Shown here one piece after another: positions 26,505 through 50,766 of a DNA stretch of 64,000 bases. Numbering within the stretch: the first letter of the stretch is position 1; each line of letters begins with the position of its first letter. A program made the translations under genes and the position numbers. The notes beneath the pieces were generated by a model, which saw only the letters and a list, made by a program, of their open reading frames with translations, did not search any database and was not told where the DNA came from. The stretch covers positions 16,120,001-16,184,000 of the forward strand of contig OZ286460.1 in the NCBI GenBank assembly GCA_965644265.1, read 5' to 3'. The DNA comes from Glycera tridactyla (Eukaryota).

Positions 26505-29500
26505 TGAGTCTCTTTAGTATTTTTCATGTCCTCCTCCCCAAATCTGGGGCGGTACTTGTATTGACATAACTCAATCACTTTGGTGTTTTCACCTGCGAGT
26601 AGCCCTTTTCCCCTACCCTTTGGTGGGAGAAATATTGTATACCTGACACATCGAGAAATAACAGTTTCCATACTACGCAGACATTTATGTCTGTCCTTGG
26701 CTAAGAATACTACATCTGATGTCATTTTCCCAAGCGAATATTTGCATGGTGTACTAATACGTAGCGGGGACATAGAATTGAACCCTGGTCCTGACTTGTT
26801 AACTAATACCTCAATCTCTCCAAATTCAAACACCTTTGATGATATAGCAAAGTACAAAGGCATCACCACGGCTCACCTAAACATTTGTAGTCTGGTAAAG
26901 AAAGTTGACCATGTACATGGCATCCTTCACAGAAGTAACATAGATATTTTGTTTTTATCTGAGACATGGTGTAGTCCTGATGTCTGTCAGTCCGAAATTT
27001 CAATCCCTGGCTATTTTATTCTGAGACAGGATAGAAAGTCTTCCACCAGGAAAAGAGGGGGAGGCATTTGTGTATACATAAAGGACAAATACCGATGTGC
27101 TCTGAATGATGACCTATGCTGTTCTCTGGATGATCTTGAAGTTCTTGGCTGCAATTTGCTACTACCCAATACTAGGAAAATCTTCTTGCTGGGTGTGTAC
27201 CGTCCACCATCAGGGAATATATCTTTTGCCATTGAAAAGTTGAATGATCTTATGAATGTAACCTTGGAATCACCAGGTGCCGAAGTAAATTTTCTCGGAG
27301 ACTTTAATATAGATATTTCTAAGATAAGGCAAAATGATACCCGATCCATCAAGCTCTGGGCATCAACCTTTGGCCTTTCCCAAATGATAATGGATCCAAC
27401 CAGAATAGGGCTGGGTGGAGAGACCCTAATTGACCATATATATACCAACAGAACTGATTATGTGACAAATGTAGGGAATGTTTCGCATGGCATTAGTGAC
27501 CACGATTTGATATTCTATGTGAGAAAAAAACCTAAAATTAAATGCGATGTCACTTATATCTATGCAAGAAGTTTTATTCGTTTCAACCCCATAGATTTCT
27601 GCAACGACGTGTCTCAAATAGATTGGGGTACAGTCATAGATAGCACACAGGTCAATGAAGCATGGGAGCTTTTCCTGGGACTTTTCATACCAATTTGCGA
27701 CAAACATGCACCTTTCAAAAAAATTAGAATTAAAGGAAATCTTCCTCCCTGGATCAATCATGAATATTTTTCTATAGCTGATGAGCGAGACTATTGGAAG
27801 CGTAAATACAAAAGAAACAAGTGTGATTTATATCATGAAAATTTCAAAAGACTCAGAAATTTGGCCACTGATTTTAGTAGAAATCTCAAGCGAAATTATA
27901 TAATGACAGAATTGGAGAAAAGCAAAAACGACTCTGGTAAAGCCTGGCGTATCCTGAATAATATACTACCAAATAAGAAAAAGGTCAATACCATCCCAAA
28001 TATTGTAAATGGAAACACGGATCCTAAATTTATTGCGGATGAAATGAATGATTATTTTGCAAGTGTTGGCCGAACCCTTGCATCCAAAATTCAGGCAGGA
28101 AATCATACTGCAGTACCGGAGATCCCTGAAGTAGCTGAGAAATTTACCTTTTCATTAATTAGAAGGGACGACTTGCTGAAAATGCTCCAGGGGATATCTA
28201 CTTCTAAGGCAACAGGACTTGATGGATTGAATCCAAAGTTTATCACACCAGCAGCAGAACAAATTATTGACCCTATATTGCATATTGTAAATAGTTCTCT
28301 GAGTTCTGGTGTTGTTCCAACTGCATGGAAAAGAGCCAAAATTACTCCGTTGTTTAAAGAGGGTGATAGGGATGAGCCCGTAAATTATAGGCCAATCTCT
28401 GTTCTCTCGATTCTGTCAAAGATTATGGAAAGGACGGTACACAACCAAGTTTATACCTTTCTGACAGTCAATAATTTGCTCCACGAAGCCCAATCTGGTT
28501 TTAGGAAGGGACATTCAACTGAAAGTTGTGCTCTGAATGTGATTGATGATGTGTTATCTAGTATGGACTCAGGTCTACATACGGGTATGATCTTTTTAGA
28601 TTTTAAAAAAGCCTTTGACACTGTCGACCATGCCATACTGTTACAGAAATTGGAGCGGTATGGCATGAGCGACAGTGTCGTCAAATGGTTTCAGGACTAT
28701 TTGTCAAATCGAGAGCAGTATACATCTGTCCGAAATCACTTATCTGAGTCAAAACTGGTGTCATGCGGAGTGCCCCAAGGGTCCATTCTTGGGCCTTTGT
28801 TATTCATATTGTACATTAATGACCTACCAAACGTGTTGATGCATTCCAAAATTGTATTATATGCAGATGACACCGCAATTTATTATGAATCGGATGATTT
28901 GGAGGAGATAAACACTATGCTACAGGCAGATTTGACAAGTATTGATAATTGGATGAAAGTGAACAAATTGTCACTAAACACTTCAAAATCGAAAAGTATG
29001 CTGTTCTCGAGGAAACAAACTGTTCATCTCCTGAAACTTAATGTAGGATTGAATGATGTATCTCTGGAACAGGTTGATCAATTTAAATATCTTGGCCTAT
29101 ATCTCGACCCGAGACTTGATTTTGGTAAGCATATCACAAATGTCTGTGTGAAAGGTAAACAAAAACTTGCTGCTCTAGGGAGAGCCAGACCTTTTGTTAA
29201 TGAGAAGACAGCTTTAACCATGTATAAAGCACTTATCCTGCCAACGGTTGAATACTGTAGCGTAGTATATATGACAGCGGGTGTGAATTTTCTCCAGAAG
29301 CTACAGAAAATTCAAAACTCAGCGTTTCGTATTGTTTTGAAAGCAGAGCGTCTTACTCCATCTATAGATTTGCACAACAGGGTGAATATGTTCCAACTTG
29401 TTGATCAAAGGAAGCAAAAACTTCTCACTTGCATGTATAAATTTACCCATAGACTAGGTCCAGAATATATGACCAGAAGATTCTCATATGTAAGAGATCA

Positions 29501-29994
29501 TCACCAGAGAGAGACAAGAGCAGTTGCCAATGATGATCTTTATGTTCCCACTTTTCGTTCCAAGGCTGGTGAGCAGAGGATTAGTATAAGAGGACCCAGA
29601 GAATGGAATGTTTTGGACAATACAACGAAAGAAGCAAGAAATATTGACATTTTCAAGAAGAGTTTATTAGACAATCTGCAGCAAACATACAACTTCGAAC
29701 GAAACAATGAGTAGAAATAAGTACCATCTTCAAGAAGAGCATTTCGATATATTAGAAACTAGAAAGAAAGTATATCTTGAGCTAATGTCTGCCTTTGATG
29801 TATTTTCCTGTCTGTTTCTCTCTTCCCTTTATTTGTCTCTTTTTTCTCTTTTTTCTTTTTCTCTTTCTTTCTCTTTTTATTTCCATGTATGAACCAGGTG
29901 GTATCTATGTTATGTATTGGGCCAATTTTATGGCAGCCATTGGCTGATTTTGTGTTTCCCAATTCAAATAAACAATTACAAACAAACAAACAAA
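26505..29994 (+). mobile_element. LINE copy 1 (ORF2 + 3' UTR + (ACAA)n tail); 5' boundary uncertain
   Basis: ORF2 is followed by a pyrimidine-rich 3' UTR, AATAAA (29967-29972) and an ACAA tandem tail (29978-29994), typical of CR1/L2-group 3' ends. No ORF1 and no TSD seen upstream. Confidence 0.85.
26580..29714 (+). CDS. Intact non-LTR retrotransposon ORF2 (APE endonuclease + reverse transcriptase), CR1/L2-group LINE, with N-terminal 2A-like peptide
   Basis: 1044-codon open frame. APE motifs HLNICSL, FLSETW, YRPP, GDFNID, TLIDHIY, SDHDL; RT motifs NYRPISVL, QSGFR, FLDFKKAFDTVDH, GVPQGSILGPLLF, YADD (28860-28871), KYLG. GDIELNPGP at 26766-26792. Confidence 0.97.
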   Translation: MVFSPASSPFPLPFGGRNIVYLTHREITVSILRRHLCLSLAKNTTSDVIFPSEYLHGVLIRSGDIELNPGPDLLTNTSISPNSNTFDDIAKYKGITTAHLNICSLVKKVDHVHGILHRSNIDILFLSETWCSPDVCQSEISIPGYFILRQDRKSSTRKRGGGICVYIKDKYRCALNDDLCCSLDDLEVLGCNLLLPNTRKIFLLGVYRPPSGNISFAIEKLNDLMNVTLESPGAEVNFLGDFNIDISKIRQNDTRSIKLWASTFGLSQMIMDPTRIGLGGETLIDHIYTNRTDYVTNVGNVSHGISDHDLIFYVRKKPKIKCDVTYIYARSFIRFNPIDFCNDVSQIDWGTVIDSTQVNEAWELFLGLFIPICDKHAPFKKIRIKGNLPPWINHEYFSIADERDYWKRKYKRNKCDLYHENFKRLRNLATDFSRNLKRNYIMTELEKSKNDSGKAWRILNNILPNKKKVNTIPNIVNGNTDPKFIADEMNDYFASVGRTLASKIQAGNHTAVPEIPEVAEKFTFSLIRRDDLLKMLQGISTSKATGLDGLNPKFITPAAEQIIDPILHIVNSSLSSGVVPTAWKRAKITPLFKEGDRDEPVNYRPISVLSILSKIMERTVHNQVYTFLTVNNLLHEAQSGFRKGHSTESCALNVIDDVLSSMDSGLHTGMIFLDFKKAFDTVDHAILLQKLERYGMSDSVVKWFQDYLSNREQYTSVRNHLSESKLVSCGVPQGSILGPLLFILYINDLPNVLMHSKIVLYADDTAIYYESDDLEEINTMLQADLTSIDNWMKVNKLSLNTSKSKSMLFSRKQTVHLLKLNVGLNDVSLEQVDQFKYLGLYLDPRLDFGKHITNVCVKGKQKLAALGRARPFVNEKTALTMYKALILPTVEYCSVVYMTAGVNFLQKLQKIQNSAFRIVLKAERLTPSIDLHNRVNMFQLVDQRKQKLLTCMYKFTHRLGPEYMTRRFSYVRDHHQRETRAVANDDLYVPTFRSKAGEQRISIRGPREWNVLDNTTKEARNIDIFKKSLLDNLQQTYNFERNNE

Positions 29995-43300: not shown

Positions 43301-43936
43301 ACACTTGCCACAAGTTCCCTTCTATTATTCTCGTAACAATTTGTTACAATTTCGCCTGCACAGAGCATATTCATGTCTGGTACTTCTTCACTGATACTTG
43401 TCGTTGATTCAATCCAAAATGGGGGAGAAGTCCCCATATATAGTGAATCCTGTGAAGAATAGAAAATCTTTATACCATTCAATCGATATTCCTGGCCTAT
43501 GAAAACAAATTCCAAGAAATTTCAGGTGATTGCTTGTTCCATGTTTTTCCTTACAACACAGAAATATATTCATAAGTAATCCAGGTAAAGGGGCATAATT
43601 TTGAATTCTCAGCCAGGACACCCATGTTTGAAGCATGTCAGGTACAGTTTGATCACCAAGTGTGCAACAGAGAGATTTTGTCTCATAATAATTGCAGCAT
43701 GGAATGAAGAATTCAGTTCATCTTATGAAGATACTCTGGTGATATTCATCTCATGGAAATTTTTGAAAGTGCTCGGAAAAATAGATCAGCAGATTCCTCC
43801 AAAGTTGATACAATGGTGGTAAAAGGTGATTGCTATACAATTTATATCACAGTAGTCTTGGTTTACTAGTAAATATACTGATTCACTTGAAGATTTTATA
43901 CTGAGATCACAGAGCACACCTCGGTATAAAGACCAC

Positions 43937-45352
43937 TTGGAAGTATCTGCTCGAGAGTTTTTCCACGAAGAATCTGCTATTCCTGCCAGTGACTCTAGTG
44001 TGTACGAAGAAATATCTGGTTTATTTGCTGAAGCATCCAACCCTTCTTCTAGGAGGAGATCATTTTATCAATTAGAGAGTGACATTACAGATCTCCAGAA
44101 GAAATTTTATAGGGAAATTGAAGAGCCACCAAGTATCCCAGAAGACTGGCCTTTTGATTCCGAGAATAACTGGTTCGCATGTGTGAATAGTGACTCCAGG
44201 TCTTCCATAAACAGCATTAAGTCTGAGGTACTGAAATCTATATCAGAAAGTAACCTTGACCAGCAGAGTCCCTCTGTAAAAATGTCTCAAATACAAATTG
44301 ATCCAGATCAATTCATGAATCTTTTCAACACTGCCTTTAAAAGGATGGTGTCTTCTGAAGAACATAAATCCTCAATGGTTGATATTGTAACAGAGGTTCT
44401 CTCTACCACTGAAAAAAGAATTGAAGATGTTGAGATGACTTTGAGAGCTCAAACTCAAAAGCACAATGCCATGTCAGACTGGATTGCTGATGTGTCGGCA
44501 AATGTTAAGAGCTTGGAATCCAAATATGCTAATCCTGACATCATGTTGAGCACCATGGAGGCTTCTATTAAGAAAATAGCACTTAAATGTGATGCTACAT
44601 GCAATCAGTCCAAACAAGTATCTGAACTGGATGCAAAGGTCCAATTGATTTCAATACAATTGAATGAATTATCAAGTGACATGAATGGTATAAAAAGGAT
44701 GGATGATGGTGATATGACTGAAAAGCTGAAAGATGCATGGGTGAAGCTTGATAAGGTTGATAAGGTTGCGAGAGATGTCGAAAATAGAGCAAGTGCTGTG
44801 CCACAACAACAACTGGGTGCCCTGACTGAGAAAGTGAGACAATTGGAATCAACATCCAATCAGAAATATCTGGTGTTTGATGGTGTCCCAGAGGCACAGA
44901 ATGAAAATACTCCTGAACTGCTTGTTAATACTGTTGGTGTACTATTGAGACCTCAATTGAGGCTAGCTGACATTGAAAATGCCAGGAGAATTGGTAGAGT
45001 GTCAAATAGACCAAGAACAATTCTGGTGGAGTTTGTGCATACTAGCAAAAGCCAATCTGTGTATCAAGGGAAAATGGAGCTTGCCAGACTCAAAACCCAT
45101 TCTTATATTGGTGAATATCTGTCCAAAGAAATTGCACATCTATTTTTCCTGGCCGGGCAATTAAGGGGTGAAGGGAAAGCACTTTCAAGGGCATGGACCT
45201 TTAGAGGCCAAGTTTTTGTGGCTAAAGGAAAAAATGCAAGAGGAACCCCTGTTAAAACTGAAAGGGAATTGAATGAATTCATTCGCATTGGTGTGGATAT
45301 TGTTGAACAACCACCAAATATGAATCCCCCACAACTTATGCAAACTAATTAG
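43937..45352 (+). CDS. LINE ORF1p-like protein (acidic N-terminus, coiled coil, L1-type RRM and C-terminal domain)
   Basis: 471-codon frame (open from 43856; first ATG at 44282). Heptad-rich central region, then YLVFDGVPEAQNENT...IENARRIGR...RPRTILVEF...AWTFRGQVFV, the pattern of L1-like ORF1p found in CR1/L2/Crack-group LINEs. Lies upstream of, and co-oriented with, an APE-RT ORF. Confidence 0.85.
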   Translation: MEVSAREFFHEESAIPASDSSVYEEISGLFAEASNPSSRRRSFYQLESDITDLQKKFYREIEEPPSIPEDWPFDSENNWFACVNSDSRSSINSIKSEVLKSISESNLDQQSPSVKMSQIQIDPDQFMNLFNTAFKRMVSSEEHKSSMVDIVTEVLSTTEKRIEDVEMTLRAQTQKHNAMSDWIADVSANVKSLESKYANPDIMLSTMEASIKKIALKCDATCNQSKQVSELDAKVQLISIQLNELSSDMNGIKRMDDGDMTEKLKDAWVKLDKVDKVARDVENRASAVPQQQLGALTEKVRQLESTSNQKYLVFDGVPEAQNENTPELLVNTVGVLLRPQLRLADIENARRIGRVSNRPRTILVEFVHTSKSQSVYQGKMELARLKTHSYIGEYLSKEIAHLFFLAGQLRGEGKALSRAWTFRGQVFVAKGKNARGTPVKTERELNEFIRIGVDIVEQPPNMNPPQLMQTN

Positions 45353-45599
45353 CTTGTCTACTCTCAGTCTTGTTGAACAACTGCTACGCTAAGAGTTTTT
45401 CTCTGTTTTTCACTGGTCTCGTCTGGAAAGTTTATCACATTATTTATGTATTAATCCCTTATTACTGTTCTATTTATGTGCAAACTATCACTCCTATGGT
45501 TGTAGTATACAGGTGTTGAATTGAAGATGATCAATGATGGGGGAATCATGAGAGTTGCTTGTGATTCACCAGTCACCTGGTCATAATATAACATATGTA

Positions 45600-46300
45600 T
45601 ACTGCAAGGGGGTGTGTTCCGAATCAGCTGATCGATCGCCAGCTTGGCTGAACCGGTTTTTACGTGTGAGCGCGAGCATTCACTCTCGTGATATGAATCC
45701 TTCATGAACAGCCTTTCAACGTTAGCGATTGATTCGAATTTTTGACCATTAGTATAAAATCATATATTGAGCATATCAAGCTGGGCGATGGCATGCATTG
45801 AAGGCCTTTCTCTAAGAAAAAATTGGAACTTTTTTACTGGTCCCGGTTTCGAGAATAGAGAAGTAGTCCCGGTCAATTGTCGAACCTTGGAGGCCGTCGC
45901 GGTTCCTGATTGGCTGGCAGGCTCACGTGATCAAATATGACCAATCGTATGGCGTCTAACACTGAGGTACAAGCTGGCTACCAAATATGGAATTTAATCC
46001 AGATAAAGATGCCTATGAGGCCGTCGCGCTCACTGATTGGCCAATTGTAAACCAACGGTCTTCTAAGCCAATCAGCAATACGGATACATGCGGCATGTAG
46101 GCTGGATGGCCAAAATGGCGAACCAGTTGTTCTTGTTAGAAAATTACCAAGAAATTGTGGGCCGAAATAAATAATCCTCGACATTTATGATACTCGACCC
46201 AGGTCTTATTTGCTGAATTGAGGTGGGTTGAAGGCTGCGCGAGGTCCGTCTTGTTTCGTAGATGCCGGTGGCACGCGAAAACAAAAAGTTTCGTGTGCAC
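45600..46300 (+). promoter_or_regulatory. CpG-rich promoter-like module inside the LINE inter-ORF spacer
   Basis: Two copies, 127 bp apart, of GAGGCCGTCGCG-N5-TGATTGGC (45890-45914, 46017-46041), each followed 32 bp later by CCAATC (45941, 46068). TCACGTGA at 45923-45930; YY1-like CAAAATGGCG at 46111-46120. Confidence 0.65.
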
Positions 46301-46432
46301 AAAAATGAATGGGAAACTGATTGTAACTATACTGGTAGACCCAAGCTAAACGATCCAATGATAAGACACAGGTGTTCAATTTATGATATTTATGTATGAT
46401 ATCTAATGTTGATGGGAAGTATGAGAGTTGCC

Positions 46433-46821
46433 TGAAATGAAACTGCGGAACCAAGTAAGATGAAACAATGATGTTTTGGTACTGACTGTGAAATGTAAAT
46501 AATTCTGTTGTTATCAATTGGCTATACACCAGAATATCCCTGGTCCTGTCTCGAAACTTTCTTTATTTCCTTTTAATACAAACTCTTCTCCTCTTCAACT
46601 AAAGTGACATTTGATGTGGTTGCCTTGGCTGAATGATCTACGAATGTTCTGTGTATAAGAAGGTAAAGGTGACACTGATTGAAATGAAACTGTTGCAACA
46701 AAGCAAGATGAAACAATGATATTCTATTGACTTGAAATGTAATAATCCAGTTGTTGTCAACTGACTATGTACCTGATCACAGTTGGTCCTGTCTCGAAAC
46801 CTTCATTTCCTCTTTTTAATA
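46433..46821 (+). repeat. Diverged direct duplication (about 145 bp units, 247 bp period) just upstream of ORF2
   Basis: 46433-46578 and 46680-46821 share TGAAATGAAACTG..AAGATGAAACAATGAT..TGAAATGTAA..TGGTCCTGTCTCGAAAC..ATTTCC..TTTTAATA. Confidence 0.85.
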
Positions 46822-49734
46822 TATACCCTCCTCCTTACTAAATTTTCTTTCACTCCTATCATGATTGAACTTCATGAACTGAAAAGGTTAAATGGACTTG
46901 TATTCGCACACTTAAATGTGTGCAGTTTGAAGAATAAACTTGATGATATATTTAGATTACTTGACTGCAGTGATATTGATGTTTTAGGAATATCAGAAAC
47001 ATTCCTAGATGATAGCCTTGACTCGATGTTGTTTGACATTGAGGGGTATAATTTATACAGATTGGACCGCAAAGACCATAGTGTGAGACAGAGTGGTGGA
47101 GGAATATGTGTATACAGTAAATGTTCAATTGTATGTGACATGTCACCTCAACTATCTATGAGCAATAGGGACATAGAAATACTTGGACTCTGTATTTGCC
47201 TGAAAAACTGTAGGCCTATATATGTGTTTAATATCTATAGGCCACCATATGGAAGTATGAAAAATGCTGTACAACTGATGTCTGGGATACTAAATGATTG
47301 TCAGGTGAATCCTTTGAGTGAATTCCATTTGCTTGGTGATTATAACTGTGACTTACTGAAGTCAAATCACCCAGATTGCAGATCATTGAAAACAATGTGT
47401 TATTCCTATGACCTGATGCAATGTGTGAAAGAAGCTACTAGGATTACCACAGGAAGTTCAACGCTGATTGACCATATATATTGCAATAGAGACATTGTCG
47501 TTGCAAGTAGTGGAGTGGTCCCTTTGGGTATTAGTGATCATTCACTGGTTTTTATTCAGCGTAAGTTAAATAAATTGAAGCCAAAAGCACTATTTGTTAA
47601 CTGTAGATCTATGAAACATGTGAACCAAGAGAGCTTCTGTGATGCTGTCTCCCGTATAGACTGGTCTGATGTGTATTTTGAATTGAATCCTGATCTAGCA
47701 TGGATCATCTTCAAATTTGAATTTTTGAATATATGTGACTTATTGGCCCCTTACAAATCTATGAAAGTTAGAGGCAGGCCACCTCCATGGAATACTGATG
47801 ACATTGTCTCCTTAGCTCATCAAAGGGATAATGCAAAGAAGAAATCTGATACAACAAGATCTGCCATAGATAGATATGAATATACCACCCTTAGAAATCG
47901 TGTCACTACTATGGGCAACCATTCTAAAAGGAAATATATTGCAAACACTCTGAATGAAAATAAGGGGGATTTACGTAAGATTTGGCGTACTATTGCTCTC
48001 CTTATTCCGAAATCTAAGCAAAACATGAATGCTGATATAGATATTGGAGGTTTCAACTCAAATGTTGATATAGCAAATTGTTTTAATGAGCTTTTCTGCA
48101 CAGTTGGAGACTTGTTAGCTCAGAAAATTACCTATATATCCATGCAAGAGCTACCTGGTATAGTTAGTAGTGGAAACTTGTTTTCATTCATAAGAGTTCC
48201 AATCCTCGATATATACAAGAACCTGTCAGCTATGAGTGTGAACAAATCTACAGGTCTTGACGGCATAAATTCTAAGTTTCTCAAATGGTCTGCAGTGGTT
48301 ATTGCCCCTATTGTTTCTCATATTGTGAACAGCTCTCTCTGTAACCAAATTGTACCAACAGACTGGAAGATTGCTCGTATCTCACCTTTGTACAAGGACG
48401 GTCCCAGGACCGATCCTGGCAATTATAGGCCAATATCAGTTCTGCCAATCATGGCCAAGGTACAGGAACGCATGGTACATGATCAATTATACAAGCATTT
48501 TACAGAGAACGATCTATTTGAGGCATGTCAGTCTGGTTTCAGAAGTGGAATGTCCACTATCACTTGCTGTACTACTGTTCTACACGATATATATGTTGGC
48601 ATTGATTGTGGGAAGATGACTGCAATGGTATTTTTGGACCTGAAGAAGGCGTTCGATACTGTCGACCATGGTATTCTTGTCCAAAAATTGAGAGACTATG
48701 GAGTGGTCGGCAGTTCGAACGCCTGGATCAGAAACTATCTATCTAATCGTAAGCAAGTGACAAAGTATAAAAATGCACTTTCGAATCCGGGGAATGTCAC
48801 ATGTGGTGTCCCGCAGGGATCTATTTTGGGGCCGCTCTTATTCATTATATACATTAATGATCTGTGCCTTAACGTTAAGCAGTCCCAAATTGCTATGTAT
48901 GCTGATGACAGAGCTTTATATGCCAGTGGCACTAGTATTATAGAAATCAGGGATAAGCTTATGTCAGACCTTGCCGAAGTGGACAAATGGCTTATGGCAA
49001 ATCGATTAACACTAAATGTCAAAAAAACAAAAGCTATGCTTTTTCATAGCAATATGTATAGAGGTCAAAAGCAACTTGATCTGAGCATTCATGGTGAAGT
49101 TATTGAACAAGTGCTAACATTTAAATATCTCGGGATGACTCTGGATAGTAAACTGACTTTTGATGATCATCTGAGTATCACTGTTTCAAAAACCAGAAAG
49201 CGTCTGGGTGCCATAAGACATGTCAGGAAGTTCATAGATGGTAATGTCAGCCATATGCTATATAAGACACTTGTCATTCCACATTTTGACTATGGTGATT
49301 TGTTATACATGCATGCATCAGATACATCTTTGAATAAGTTGCAGATCATGCAAAATGCTGCCTGTCGCCTAATTCTGAAGGCTGAATGGTTAAGAAGTAG
49401 TGATAGCATGCATTTAGCCTTGAAAATGCCGAGACTCTCTGAGCGAAGGAGGTATCACATTGCACTTTTTGTATACAAAGTACTTAACAATCATATCCAG
49501 TGTGTCAAGACTAGATCACTCTTTGAGTGGGTGAGTGATTCTCATAACGTAAACACCAGAGCAAGTAGAAATCTAGATCTTAAAGTACCCAGAACACATA
49601 GCAGATGTCTGGATAGAAGTGTCTATGTTCAGGGGCCACATATATGGAATAGTCTATCAGCTGAAGTGAGAGGAAAACCATCTTTAGGTTCTTTCAAGAG
49701 TGCATATATTAAGATGTACATGAATTTTGATTGA
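46783..49734 (+). CDS. Intact LINE ORF2 (APE + RT), likely start ATG at 46861
   Basis: 983-codon frame. HLNVCSL, GISETF, YRPP, GDYN, TLIDHIY, SDHSL; NYRPISVL, QSGFR, FLDLKKAFDTVDH, GVPQGSILGPLLF, YADD (48898-48909), KYLG. Confidence 0.97.
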   Translation: MVLSRNLHFLFLIYTLLLTKFSFTPIMIELHELKRLNGLVFAHLNVCSLKNKLDDIFRLLDCSDIDVLGISETFLDDSLDSMLFDIEGYNLYRLDRKDHSVRQSGGGICVYSKCSIVCDMSPQLSMSNRDIEILGLCICLKNCRPIYVFNIYRPPYGSMKNAVQLMSGILNDCQVNPLSEFHLLGDYNCDLLKSNHPDCRSLKTMCYSYDLMQCVKEATRITTGSSTLIDHIYCNRDIVVASSGVVPLGISDHSLVFIQRKLNKLKPKALFVNCRSMKHVNQESFCDAVSRIDWSDVYFELNPDLAWIIFKFEFLNICDLLAPYKSMKVRGRPPPWNTDDIVSLAHQRDNAKKKSDTTRSAIDRYEYTTLRNRVTTMGNHSKRKYIANTLNENKGDLRKIWRTIALLIPKSKQNMNADIDIGGFNSNVDIANCFNELFCTVGDLLAQKITYISMQELPGIVSSGNLFSFIRVPILDIYKNLSAMSVNKSTGLDGINSKFLKWSAVVIAPIVSHIVNSSLCNQIVPTDWKIARISPLYKDGPRTDPGNYRPISVLPIMAKVQERMVHDQLYKHFTENDLFEACQSGFRSGMSTITCCTTVLHDIYVGIDCGKMTAMVFLDLKKAFDTVDHGILVQKLRDYGVVGSSNAWIRNYLSNRKQVTKYKNALSNPGNVTCGVPQGSILGPLLFIIYINDLCLNVKQSQIAMYADDRALYASGTSIIEIRDKLMSDLAEVDKWLMANRLTLNVKKTKAMLFHSNMYRGQKQLDLSIHGEVIEQVLTFKYLGMTLDSKLTFDDHLSITVSKTRKRLGAIRHVRKFIDGNVSHMLYKTLVIPHFDYGDLLYMHASDTSLNKLQIMQNAACRLILKAEWLRSSDSMHLALKMPRLSERRRYHIALFVYKVLNNHIQCVKTRSLFEWVSDSHNVNTRASRNLDLKVPRTHSRCLDRSVYVQGPHIWNSLSAEVRGKPSLGSFKSAYIKMYMNFD

Positions 49735-50766
49735 TATATACCATGTTTCTCCTTCTCCATAGTTATAATACTGTGAAATACAACTGGGAATACGAAAAAT
49801 GCTAGACGACTGAACTGAATTTTTTTTCACATGTTTTATTTATATGATACAACATATGTATGTACAATTGTTTGACATTTTTGATACAAGCAAAGCAATT
49901 TTGGGTCACAGCTGAAAGAACAGACCCTGAGTCTGACTTTATGATTAATACTGGACACCATATATGAACTAAGCTGTTTGTCGCCTATTTTATTACAAAA
50001 TAAAAGATATTGTCATTGTCATTGTCATGTAATCAGGATGGGCGTTGTGTGTTGCTGCTGTTTTTCTTAGAAAACCATAATGACTGAGAGGTCTCACTCC
50101 AATTCTAAGTGCATTTGATTGGAGATGGAGTCTTTTCTAAATATTTCCCATGGTGGATGGACAGTTTCCAGACTCACATACCTGTGACCAATAAAAATCA
50201 TCCCCCTAAACAGCTCGGTGGTCATGCCAAATGAGGACACTATCATAACTGTTGACAAACTTGGTTTTGGATTCCCTCCAAATTATGATAGTGTCACTCT
50301 GTTTGCCAACAATATTTGTGGAACAGACTATTGGAATGTATATCTGCATTTGAACAATCATTTTCAACAAAGCTATACTAGTTCATTCCAAGTATTTCAT
50401 ACCTGAAATAGAACAAGACAGAAGTTACTGAGAAGGACCTAGAACCAACCGAGTGATACCTGCAACAAGGAATCACCGCTAGTTTCACCAAAGAATCGTA
50501 CCTGAATAGAGGTATATCTGACTATGAAGAATGAAGGAGCTGCCCAGAAAATGAGGTCTCCCATTATAACTGGACTCTCGTCAGGGGACTCCTTACCACT
50601 CAATCAGTTTGCTGTTTCAGTGAAATCTACGATAAATGCTGACAGGAGACTGCTTTTGAGGTAGCTTTTGTATTTAACATACATGTAGCTGAATATACTT
50701 CCAACGAGACACCTCCTCTTTTGAGAGACCACTTTTGCTGACATTTAGGTATAGGTCTCACATCGC

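Follow-up and report, generated by a model that had tools for sequence, protein, structure and literature searches.

In the prevailing view, long interspersed nuclear elements (LINEs) rely on a single internal promoter, located at the 5' end, and make the protein of their second open reading frame (ORF2) from a bicistronic RNA by means that are poorly understood. A LINE of Glycera tridactyla (assembly GCA_965644265.1, contig OZ286460.1) raises the question of whether such an element can own a second promoter, placed between ORF1 and ORF2. The element lies on the forward strand of a 64,000-nucleotide stretch (positions 16,120,001 to 16,184,000 of the contig), which is called the window here and to which all coordinates without a prefix refer. 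A first-pass annotation of the window had proposed such a promoter from a CpG cluster and a set of motifs in the spacer between the two ORFs. Here, we describe a CpG-island module in this spacer (45562-46367) whose motifs are under selection, and we weigh what the module may do for the element.

The LINE copy reaches from 43866 to 50028, the first and last bases of family homology in a comparison with more than 20 copies, and belongs to a rare lineage with a long spacer. From the ORF1 stop codon to the ORF2 ATG we counted 1508 bp, not the 1.43 kb given at first. Over the 806 bp of the module the observed/expected ratio (o/e) of CpG is 1.03, against 0.33 for the whole window and 0.18-0.38 for the two flanking ORFs, so the CpG cluster seen at first reading is real. 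The module keeps an o/e of 1.0-1.2 in each of the eight copies that hold it whole, the most diverged of these included. A full-length copy of the long-spacer form (L003) carries two islands, one in its first ~600 bp (the 5' untranslated region, UTR, and the start of ORF1) and the other in the spacer module; outside them its CpG o/e is mostly 0.0-0.5. A full-length copy of the short-spacer form (L015) has the 5' island only. Such long-term retention of CpG in a CpG-depleted genome would be expected of DNA that is kept unmethylated in the germ line.

Searches of the genome with the whole spacer, and with only its CpG core, revealed that the family exists as a short and a long form. The short form is abundant and has a spacer of 347-360 bp, which corresponds to window positions 45353-45490 followed by ~25 bp and then by a leader, unit U, directly before ORF2. 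The long form is rare and has a spacer of 1.29-1.67 kb (1673 bp in L003) that holds a CpG module of 0.8-0.95 kb, bordered by ...GAGAGTTGCCTG on one side and by TGAAA(T/C)GAAACTG on the other. The module occurs in about 19 places: in the window, in L001-L010, in the core-deleted L038/L055 and in a deep subfamily, L045-L048, whose ORF1 and ORF2 are ~80% identical in protein to the rest of the family and whose module is ~70% identical in DNA. L038/L055 (G000:C29:24808521-24811048), a sister to L007, has lost the module core and retains the first ~80 and the last ~100 bp, which demonstrates that deletions of the module core occur. In L003-L008 and L045-L048 the module stands together with both ORF1 and ORF2, and because the flanks of these copies are unrelated they are independent insertions and not segmental duplications. 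The linkage whose recurrence had been put forward as a check is therefore a recurrent one. With ~19 copies carrying the module, the deepest branches among them, the idea that the CpG cluster is a one-off insertion of unrelated DNA was rejected. An origin of the module by template switching with duplication of flanking LINE sequence was also discarded: remains of the ORF1 3' end are present behind the module only in L003, L005 and L009, and they are secondary, since simpler forms without them exist (L006, L007 and L010).

Which of the two forms is older was addressed with a maximum-likelihood tree of 26 copies, built from the 3' end of ORF1 and the 5' end of ORF2. Every basal branch consists of long forms only, and all ten short forms fall in one derived clade with support of 100/100. 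A protein tree rooted with the window's other LINE family gave the same order, the clade with the short forms being supported at 95/87, and the nesting of the short form holds under midpoint and outgroup rooting. Since short forms nest inside long forms, it is the short form that lost the module. On these trees, the ancestral ORF1-ORF2 spacer of the family already held the CpG module, and the module is older than the short form. The possibility that other copies lack the spacer, which had been named as damaging to the proposal, thus proves half true: most copies do lack it, yet they do so by loss of an ancestral module.

Two conserved blocks, CAGCTGATCGATC and GTGAGCGCGAGC, lie at 45625-45680 of the module. 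CAGCTGATCGATC together with GTGAGCG is invariant in the eight closer copies, and the second block, GTGAGCGCGAGC, is partly kept in the deep subfamily. Two composite units follow. Composite 1 (45890-45946) reads GAGGCCGTCGCG-N5-TGATTGGC and continues with an E-box, TCACGTGA, and a CCAAT box (45941-45945); composite 2 (46017-46075) reads GAGGCCGTCGCG-N5-TGATTGGCCAAT ... AGCCAATCAG. A YY1-like box in sense orientation, CAAAATGGCG, lies at 46111-46120. These motifs stood up to recounting. GAGGCCGTCGCG-N5-TGATTGG, at 45890-45913 and 46017-46040, has two matches in the window with up to 3 mismatches, where 0.00 were expected from shuffled sequence; the CCAATC reported 32 bp after each ATTGG is present at 45941 and 46068; and TCACGTGA and CAAAATGGCG were found at 45923-45930 and 46111-46120, respectively. 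The spacing of 127 bp between the two units is correct for the window and does not hold as a trait of the family. Most copies have ~270 bp between the units and L008 has 244 bp, while the window copy, L001 and L002 have 126-127 bp, these three sisters sharing a derived deletion of 145 bp. Other distances are fixed: ATTGG-N27-CCAAT is constant in both composites among copies that keep the composite, the E-box lies 15 bp past the first ATTGG in every copy that keeps composite 1, and the YY1-like box is always 75 bp past the second ATTGG.

Evidence for selection on the module comes from ten aligned copies that span the deepest split of the family (791 columns). Across this split the module is ~52% identical in pairwise comparison, and ~48% outside the conserved blocks. 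Amid this divergence there are nine invariant runs of at least 6 bases, a number reached in 0 of 5000 trials when the invariant columns were shuffled (mean 0.06). Seven of the nine coincide with the flagged motifs, namely GAGGCCGTC (twice), ATTGGC / TGATTGG, CACGTGA, CAATCA and ATGGCG; GAACTT and ATTGTC make up the remainder, and the fourth CCAAT box is an invariant run of 5 bases. At ~50% background identity, the flagged motifs with their spacings remain unchanged, and the alignment shows purifying selection on them. NF-Y and YY1 are candidate identities, taken from consensus, for the factors that would bind there. A coding function was rejected because the module has no conserved ORF on either strand, and it has no Rfam match near the gathering score. 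Because the motifs are palindromic or occur in two orientations and CpG is retained, they are more readily understood as being recognized in double-stranded DNA than in RNA.

The motif set of the module is also present in 5' UTRs of LINEs in this genome. Allowing up to 2 mismatches, we counted ~400 genomic sites of the composite, compared to 0 in a reversed control; many sites share the bases that separate the two boxes, which indicates repeat families. Short forms of the same family lack both the module and a 94-bp insert described below, and have instead a 780-bp 5' extension that carries the motif set in sense orientation. In L012 and L015 this 5' UTR holds CACGTG, (C/G)AGGCCGTC..G-N5-TGATTGG, more CCAAT boxes, a YY1 site, TCGCGAGA and CCGGAT. 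The 5' end of the short form is sharp, most of the 40 scored copies beginning within a few bases of L015 position 166. A second LINE family, represented by eight copies (L021-L028), shares a 5' region of ~1.1 kb (for instance L022:650-1755) in which two GAGGCCGTC-TGATTGG composites, at a distance of 358 bp, are accompanied by CACGTGAC, TGACGTCA and CCCGGAT; variable tandem repeats of the GTGAAACAC type and an ORF1 homologue follow, and L024 encodes a 2A peptide (..AGDVEMNPG) before ORF2. An origin of the module by copying from the 5' UTR of its own family or of this second LINE family was rejected, as matches are only 16-40 bp long and at the level of motifs, and outside the motifs the regions do not align.

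The long form differs at its 5' end. In L003, the one full-length long copy scanned, the 5' island contains no CCAAT box, E-box or GGCCGTC. It does contain a YY1-like AAGATGGCCGCCAT inside a 94-bp insert exactly at the start of ORF1 (L003:735-828), and this insert, in which a palindromic YY1-like CAAGATGGCCGCCATTG is found, occurs in five copies genome-wide (L003, L004, L005, L008 and L055), all from the long-spacer lineage. The motif set is thus found once per element, in the spacer of long forms and in the 5' UTR of short forms. This complementary pattern suggests that spacer and 5' UTR are functionally equivalent locations and that promoter function moved from one to the other. Loss of the module coincides with gain of the motif-bearing 5' UTR and with a much higher copy number. 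As a separate observation, a poly-G run of variable length (6 to >25 G) is located 21 bp inside the 5' end of the long forms (L015:~945-985 and its equivalents elsewhere), and several short-form copies also end near it; this area may be a second start site or a stop of reverse transcription.

Taken over all readings that involve transcription, we consider it very probable that the module is a working, promoter-type DNA element owned by the LINE, because its motif set matches that of bona fide LINE 5' UTRs in the same genome. We propose that it is the element's own regulatory DNA, a CpG island of two composite units between ORF1 and ORF2. Each unit would consist of a GAGGCCGTC box and an inverted pair of NF-Y-type CCAAT boxes 32 bp apart, with the CACGTGA E-box after the first unit and the YY1-like box after the second. 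The module would stay unmethylated in the germ line, and RNA polymerase II would start sense transcripts in it. By analogy with the human L1 start and with promoters that have NF-Y upstream and YY1 downstream, the start may lie near 46.09-46.11 kb. These transcripts would carry ORF2 without having to cross the 1.3-1.7 kb spacer, and the module may in addition boost the 5' start site. CpG islands with NF-Y and YY1 sites normally initiate transcription and the oriented boxes point in the sense direction; a sense promoter that yields an ORF2-containing RNA is therefore the single most likely reading, to which we would give somewhat less than an even chance. Separate transcription of ORF2 from the module is plausible on this sequence evidence.

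Several results weigh against this sense promoter. All five full-length copies of the long lineage begin at one base (T(A/G)T..CTACGCCTGA...) that adjoins unrelated DNA, 2.3-2.5 kb upstream of the module, and because they share this start the RNA that gets copied would begin at the 5' end of the element, outside the module. The pile-up of 5' ends anticipated at ~45.6-46.2 kb was not observed. Three of ~15 copies start inside the module and do so at three different bases (L002 at ~45793, L009 at 46017 and L010 at 46035), about as many as random truncation would give; the closeness of 46017 and 46035 is not significant, as by our estimate some pair among the seven truncated ends would lie that near with a chance of ~0.2. 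None of the ~15 copies begins at the start predicted from motif geometry, ~46.09-46.11 kb. Nor does the family include an ORF2-only subfamily, contrary to the suggestion that an ORF2-only RNA can retrotranspose as a shorter autonomous unit. At 45% in a genome of 40%, the GC content of the module is below the classical criterion for a CpG island (o/e > 0.6 over at least 200 bp with GC of at least 50%). Contigs of four out of five small sequencing runs, of uncertain kind and none on record as RNA, cover the ORFs of the family and the short spacer and contain nothing of 45400-46400, a result that is uninformative given ~19 copies and such tiny runs. Finally, an enhancer role would explain at least as well why a 5' UTR promoter was gained as the module was lost.

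One alternative is thus that the module acts as an intragenic enhancer, or as an anti-silencing CpG island, for the 5' start (TATTCCTACGCC...), and that any ORF2-only RNA is a by-product. The common 5' base of the five full-length long copies, with no promoter sequence upstream of it, the L003 5' island devoid of CCAAT, E-box and GGCCGTC, the exchange of module for motif-bearing 5' UTR together with the rise in copy number, and the failure to see ORF2-only copies with a common start site all agree with this. On the other hand, islands of this type normally initiate transcription themselves, the sense YY1-like box at its fixed 75 bp after the CCAAT pair looks like the arrangement of a start site, and the 94-bp insert with AAGATGGCCGCCAT at the start of ORF1 could itself be the 5' promoter. 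We regard the enhancer as a strong rival, though less likely than the sense promoter. A similar probability applies to a broader scenario that would join both roles. In it, an old LINE lineage keeps its main polymerase II promoter between the ORFs, expresses ORF2 from a subgenomic transcript and drives its distant 5' start with the same DNA as an internal enhancer, while in a daughter lineage the motif set was relocated to a newly gained 5' UTR, the spacer shrank from ~1.4 kb to 347 bp, and copy number rose.

Other readings have less in their favor. An antisense or bidirectional promoter as in human and mouse L1, giving antisense RNA through ORF1 or precursors of small RNAs, would be in line with CCAAT boxes in both orientations, a palindromic E-box, the common bidirectionality of CpG-island promoters, and the antisense promoter documented inside mouse L1 ORF1 (PMC3985663). 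It is improbable nonetheless, as the GAGGCCGTC-TGATTGG composite and the YY1-like box keep the sense orientation of the LINE in all three contexts and there is no conserved antisense ORF in the module. The long spacers of vertebrate L1 have been proposed to hold internal ribosome entry sites (IRESs) (PMC5381506), and ORF2 opens here with a conserved ATGA overlap of start and stop codons, so that the module might act in the bicistronic RNA as an IRES or as an aid to re-initiation at ORF2. However, its conserved blocks are motifs of the double-strand type, palindromic or present in both orientations, its CpG retention is a property of DNA, it resembles nothing in Rfam, and short forms translate ORF2 without it. 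In addition, 22 of 23 copies lack an AUG-initiated upstream ORF that ends at the ATGA, and we hold a role in RNA to be quite improbable. Least likely of all is that the module is passenger DNA, in which case a piece of some promoter, from a host gene or a different element, would have been taken up a single time and would serve the LINE no purpose. It has no extended homology to the family's own 5' UTR and the abundant short form thrives without it, but motifs and spacings that stay invariant through ~50% background divergence (as in none of the 5000 shuffles), CpG kept in all sublineages and presence in all basal lineages are not what passenger DNA would show.

The sense promoter that we favor has partial counterparts in known LINEs. 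The YY1-bearing internal promoter in the 5' UTR of human L1, like the CpG-island 5' UTRs of mammalian L1 in general, is also a polymerase II promoter-type CpG island inside a LINE; the sense YY1-type box (C)AA(G/A)ATGGC(G/C) is common to human L1 and the module, as is a high CpG ratio beside depleted ORFs. In contrast to human L1, the module occupies the spacer between the two ORFs instead of the 5' end, paired CCAAT boxes and the GAGGCCGTC box dominate it, and its putative promoter role is read from sequence. The monomer promoters of mouse and rat L1 resemble it in having tandem units, two here, with the same set of factor sites and a unit spacing that varies by sublineage (127, 244 and ~270 bp here). 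They differ in that the module has only two units, alike in their motifs only, and is internal to a spacer. Vertebrate L1 intergenic regions between ORF1 and ORF2 measure 26-1032 bp, are mostly AT-rich or repeat-rich, and offer a parallel of a long, fast-evolving, non-coding spacer kept in one lineage and lost in a derived one (PMC5381506); the present spacer measures 1.3-1.7 kb and contains a CpG island of selected DNA motifs. The antisense promoters of mouse L1 ORF1 (PMC3985663) and of human L1 are also second promoters inside the body of a LINE, but they are antisense and lie in the 5' UTR or ORF1, whereas the oriented motifs of the module are sense and upstream of ORF2. Within the incomplete coverage of our literature search, no account was found of a promoter module that takes the form of a selected CpG island between the two ORFs.

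A selected promoter-type island in the spacer, exactly where the 5' UTR is without the motif set, would indicate that regulatory modules of LINEs can sit, and move, inside the element, and it would provide a natural test of ORF2 expression from an RNA of its own. If the broader scenario above is true, it would be a documented case of promoter relocation within a retrotransposon. The motif set (GAGGCCGTC, paired CCAAT, E-box and YY1) is common to several LINE families of this genome and could help in searching for active elements, as well as for host factors that they exploit.

The copy in the window is itself a mosaic. The full-length family reaches 1.4-1.5 kb further 5' than 43866, and the copy is 5'-truncated for this reason. 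ORF1 and ORF2 had both been taken as intact, which is right for ORF2 and wrong for ORF1. What is left of the latter (43937-45352) is an open frame without a start codon, its first Met being codon 116, that represents the C-terminal ~471 of 671 codons; compared with the complete 671-aa ORF1 of L015 (L015:1095-3110), ~200 N-terminal codons and the ATG are missing. The 5' part of the spacer (45353-45561), of which the first 138 bp are common to the short form, precedes the module. Behind the module stands a first copy of unit U of the L001/L009 type (46368-46604), and then a second copy of the module 3' end plus U of the L006/L010 type (46605-46860), which is unique to the window copy and likely a recombination joint. 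ORF2 (46861-49734, 957 aa) is followed by a 3' UTR (49735-50028) with (ATTGTC)3 at its end. In sliding comparisons, the 5' half of ORF2 is 97-100% identical to clade A of the short forms (L012-L014), and the module, together with the ORF1 3' end, matches the L001/L003 type (87-97% identity). The most natural reading of the tandem joint at 46605-46860 is that members of the family recombined or that the template was switched between them; it also shows that the copying of long forms was still under way at the time of clade A.

Unit U contains several mini-ORFs of 1-8 codons each. The ATGA overlap that opens ORF2 (ATGATTGAAC) is found at 46861-46864 and in all copies; coupling of an upstream ORF to ORF2 through it was rejected, as the frame concerned lacks an AUG in 22 of 23 copies. 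In Pfam searches the 957-aa ORF2 matches an apurinic-type endonuclease (APE; PF03372, 8e-09) and a reverse transcriptase (PF00078, 1.4e-36), and nearly all of the 20 copies first fetched reach the equivalent of 50028 while their 5' ends lie at many positions. With an ORF2 of endonuclease and reverse transcriptase, a common 3' end and variable 5' truncation, the element is an APE-type LINE. Its nearest ORF2 relatives in databases are unnamed and 36-37% identical, and the (ATTGTC)n tail is a hint to its clade, CR1/L2-like or other. The "ORF1-less copy 1" of the window (26580-29714), offered earlier as a comparison for an ORF2-only unit, is not a member of the family: it belongs to another family of the same broad group, has an ORF2 39% identical over 948 aa, and carries a 2A peptide.

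For ORF1, Pfam searches with the window remnant and with the full-length protein returned coiled-coil-type matches only and no Transposase_22, no relative was found in the PDB, and the 671-aa protein had no match among 8000 candidates scored from a search of 5.8 billion proteins. Its AlphaFold model (predicted local distance difference test score, pLDDT, 51.7) was too poor for a fold search. The C-terminal ~200 aa are ~30% identical to the ORF1 of the second LINE family and, judged by eye, look like an L1-type RNA recognition motif plus C-terminal domain.

Two minor observations concern the data themselves. The window of 64000 bases includes 1241 N, which leaves 62759 counted letters, and there is no N inside the element studied here. 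Among the nearer ORF2 relatives, one at 32% identity (P0008) is assigned in the database to Candidatus Thiodiazotropha taylori, as part of a metagenome-assembled bacterial genome, and the presence of a eukaryote-type LINE under that name looks like contamination from the animal host.

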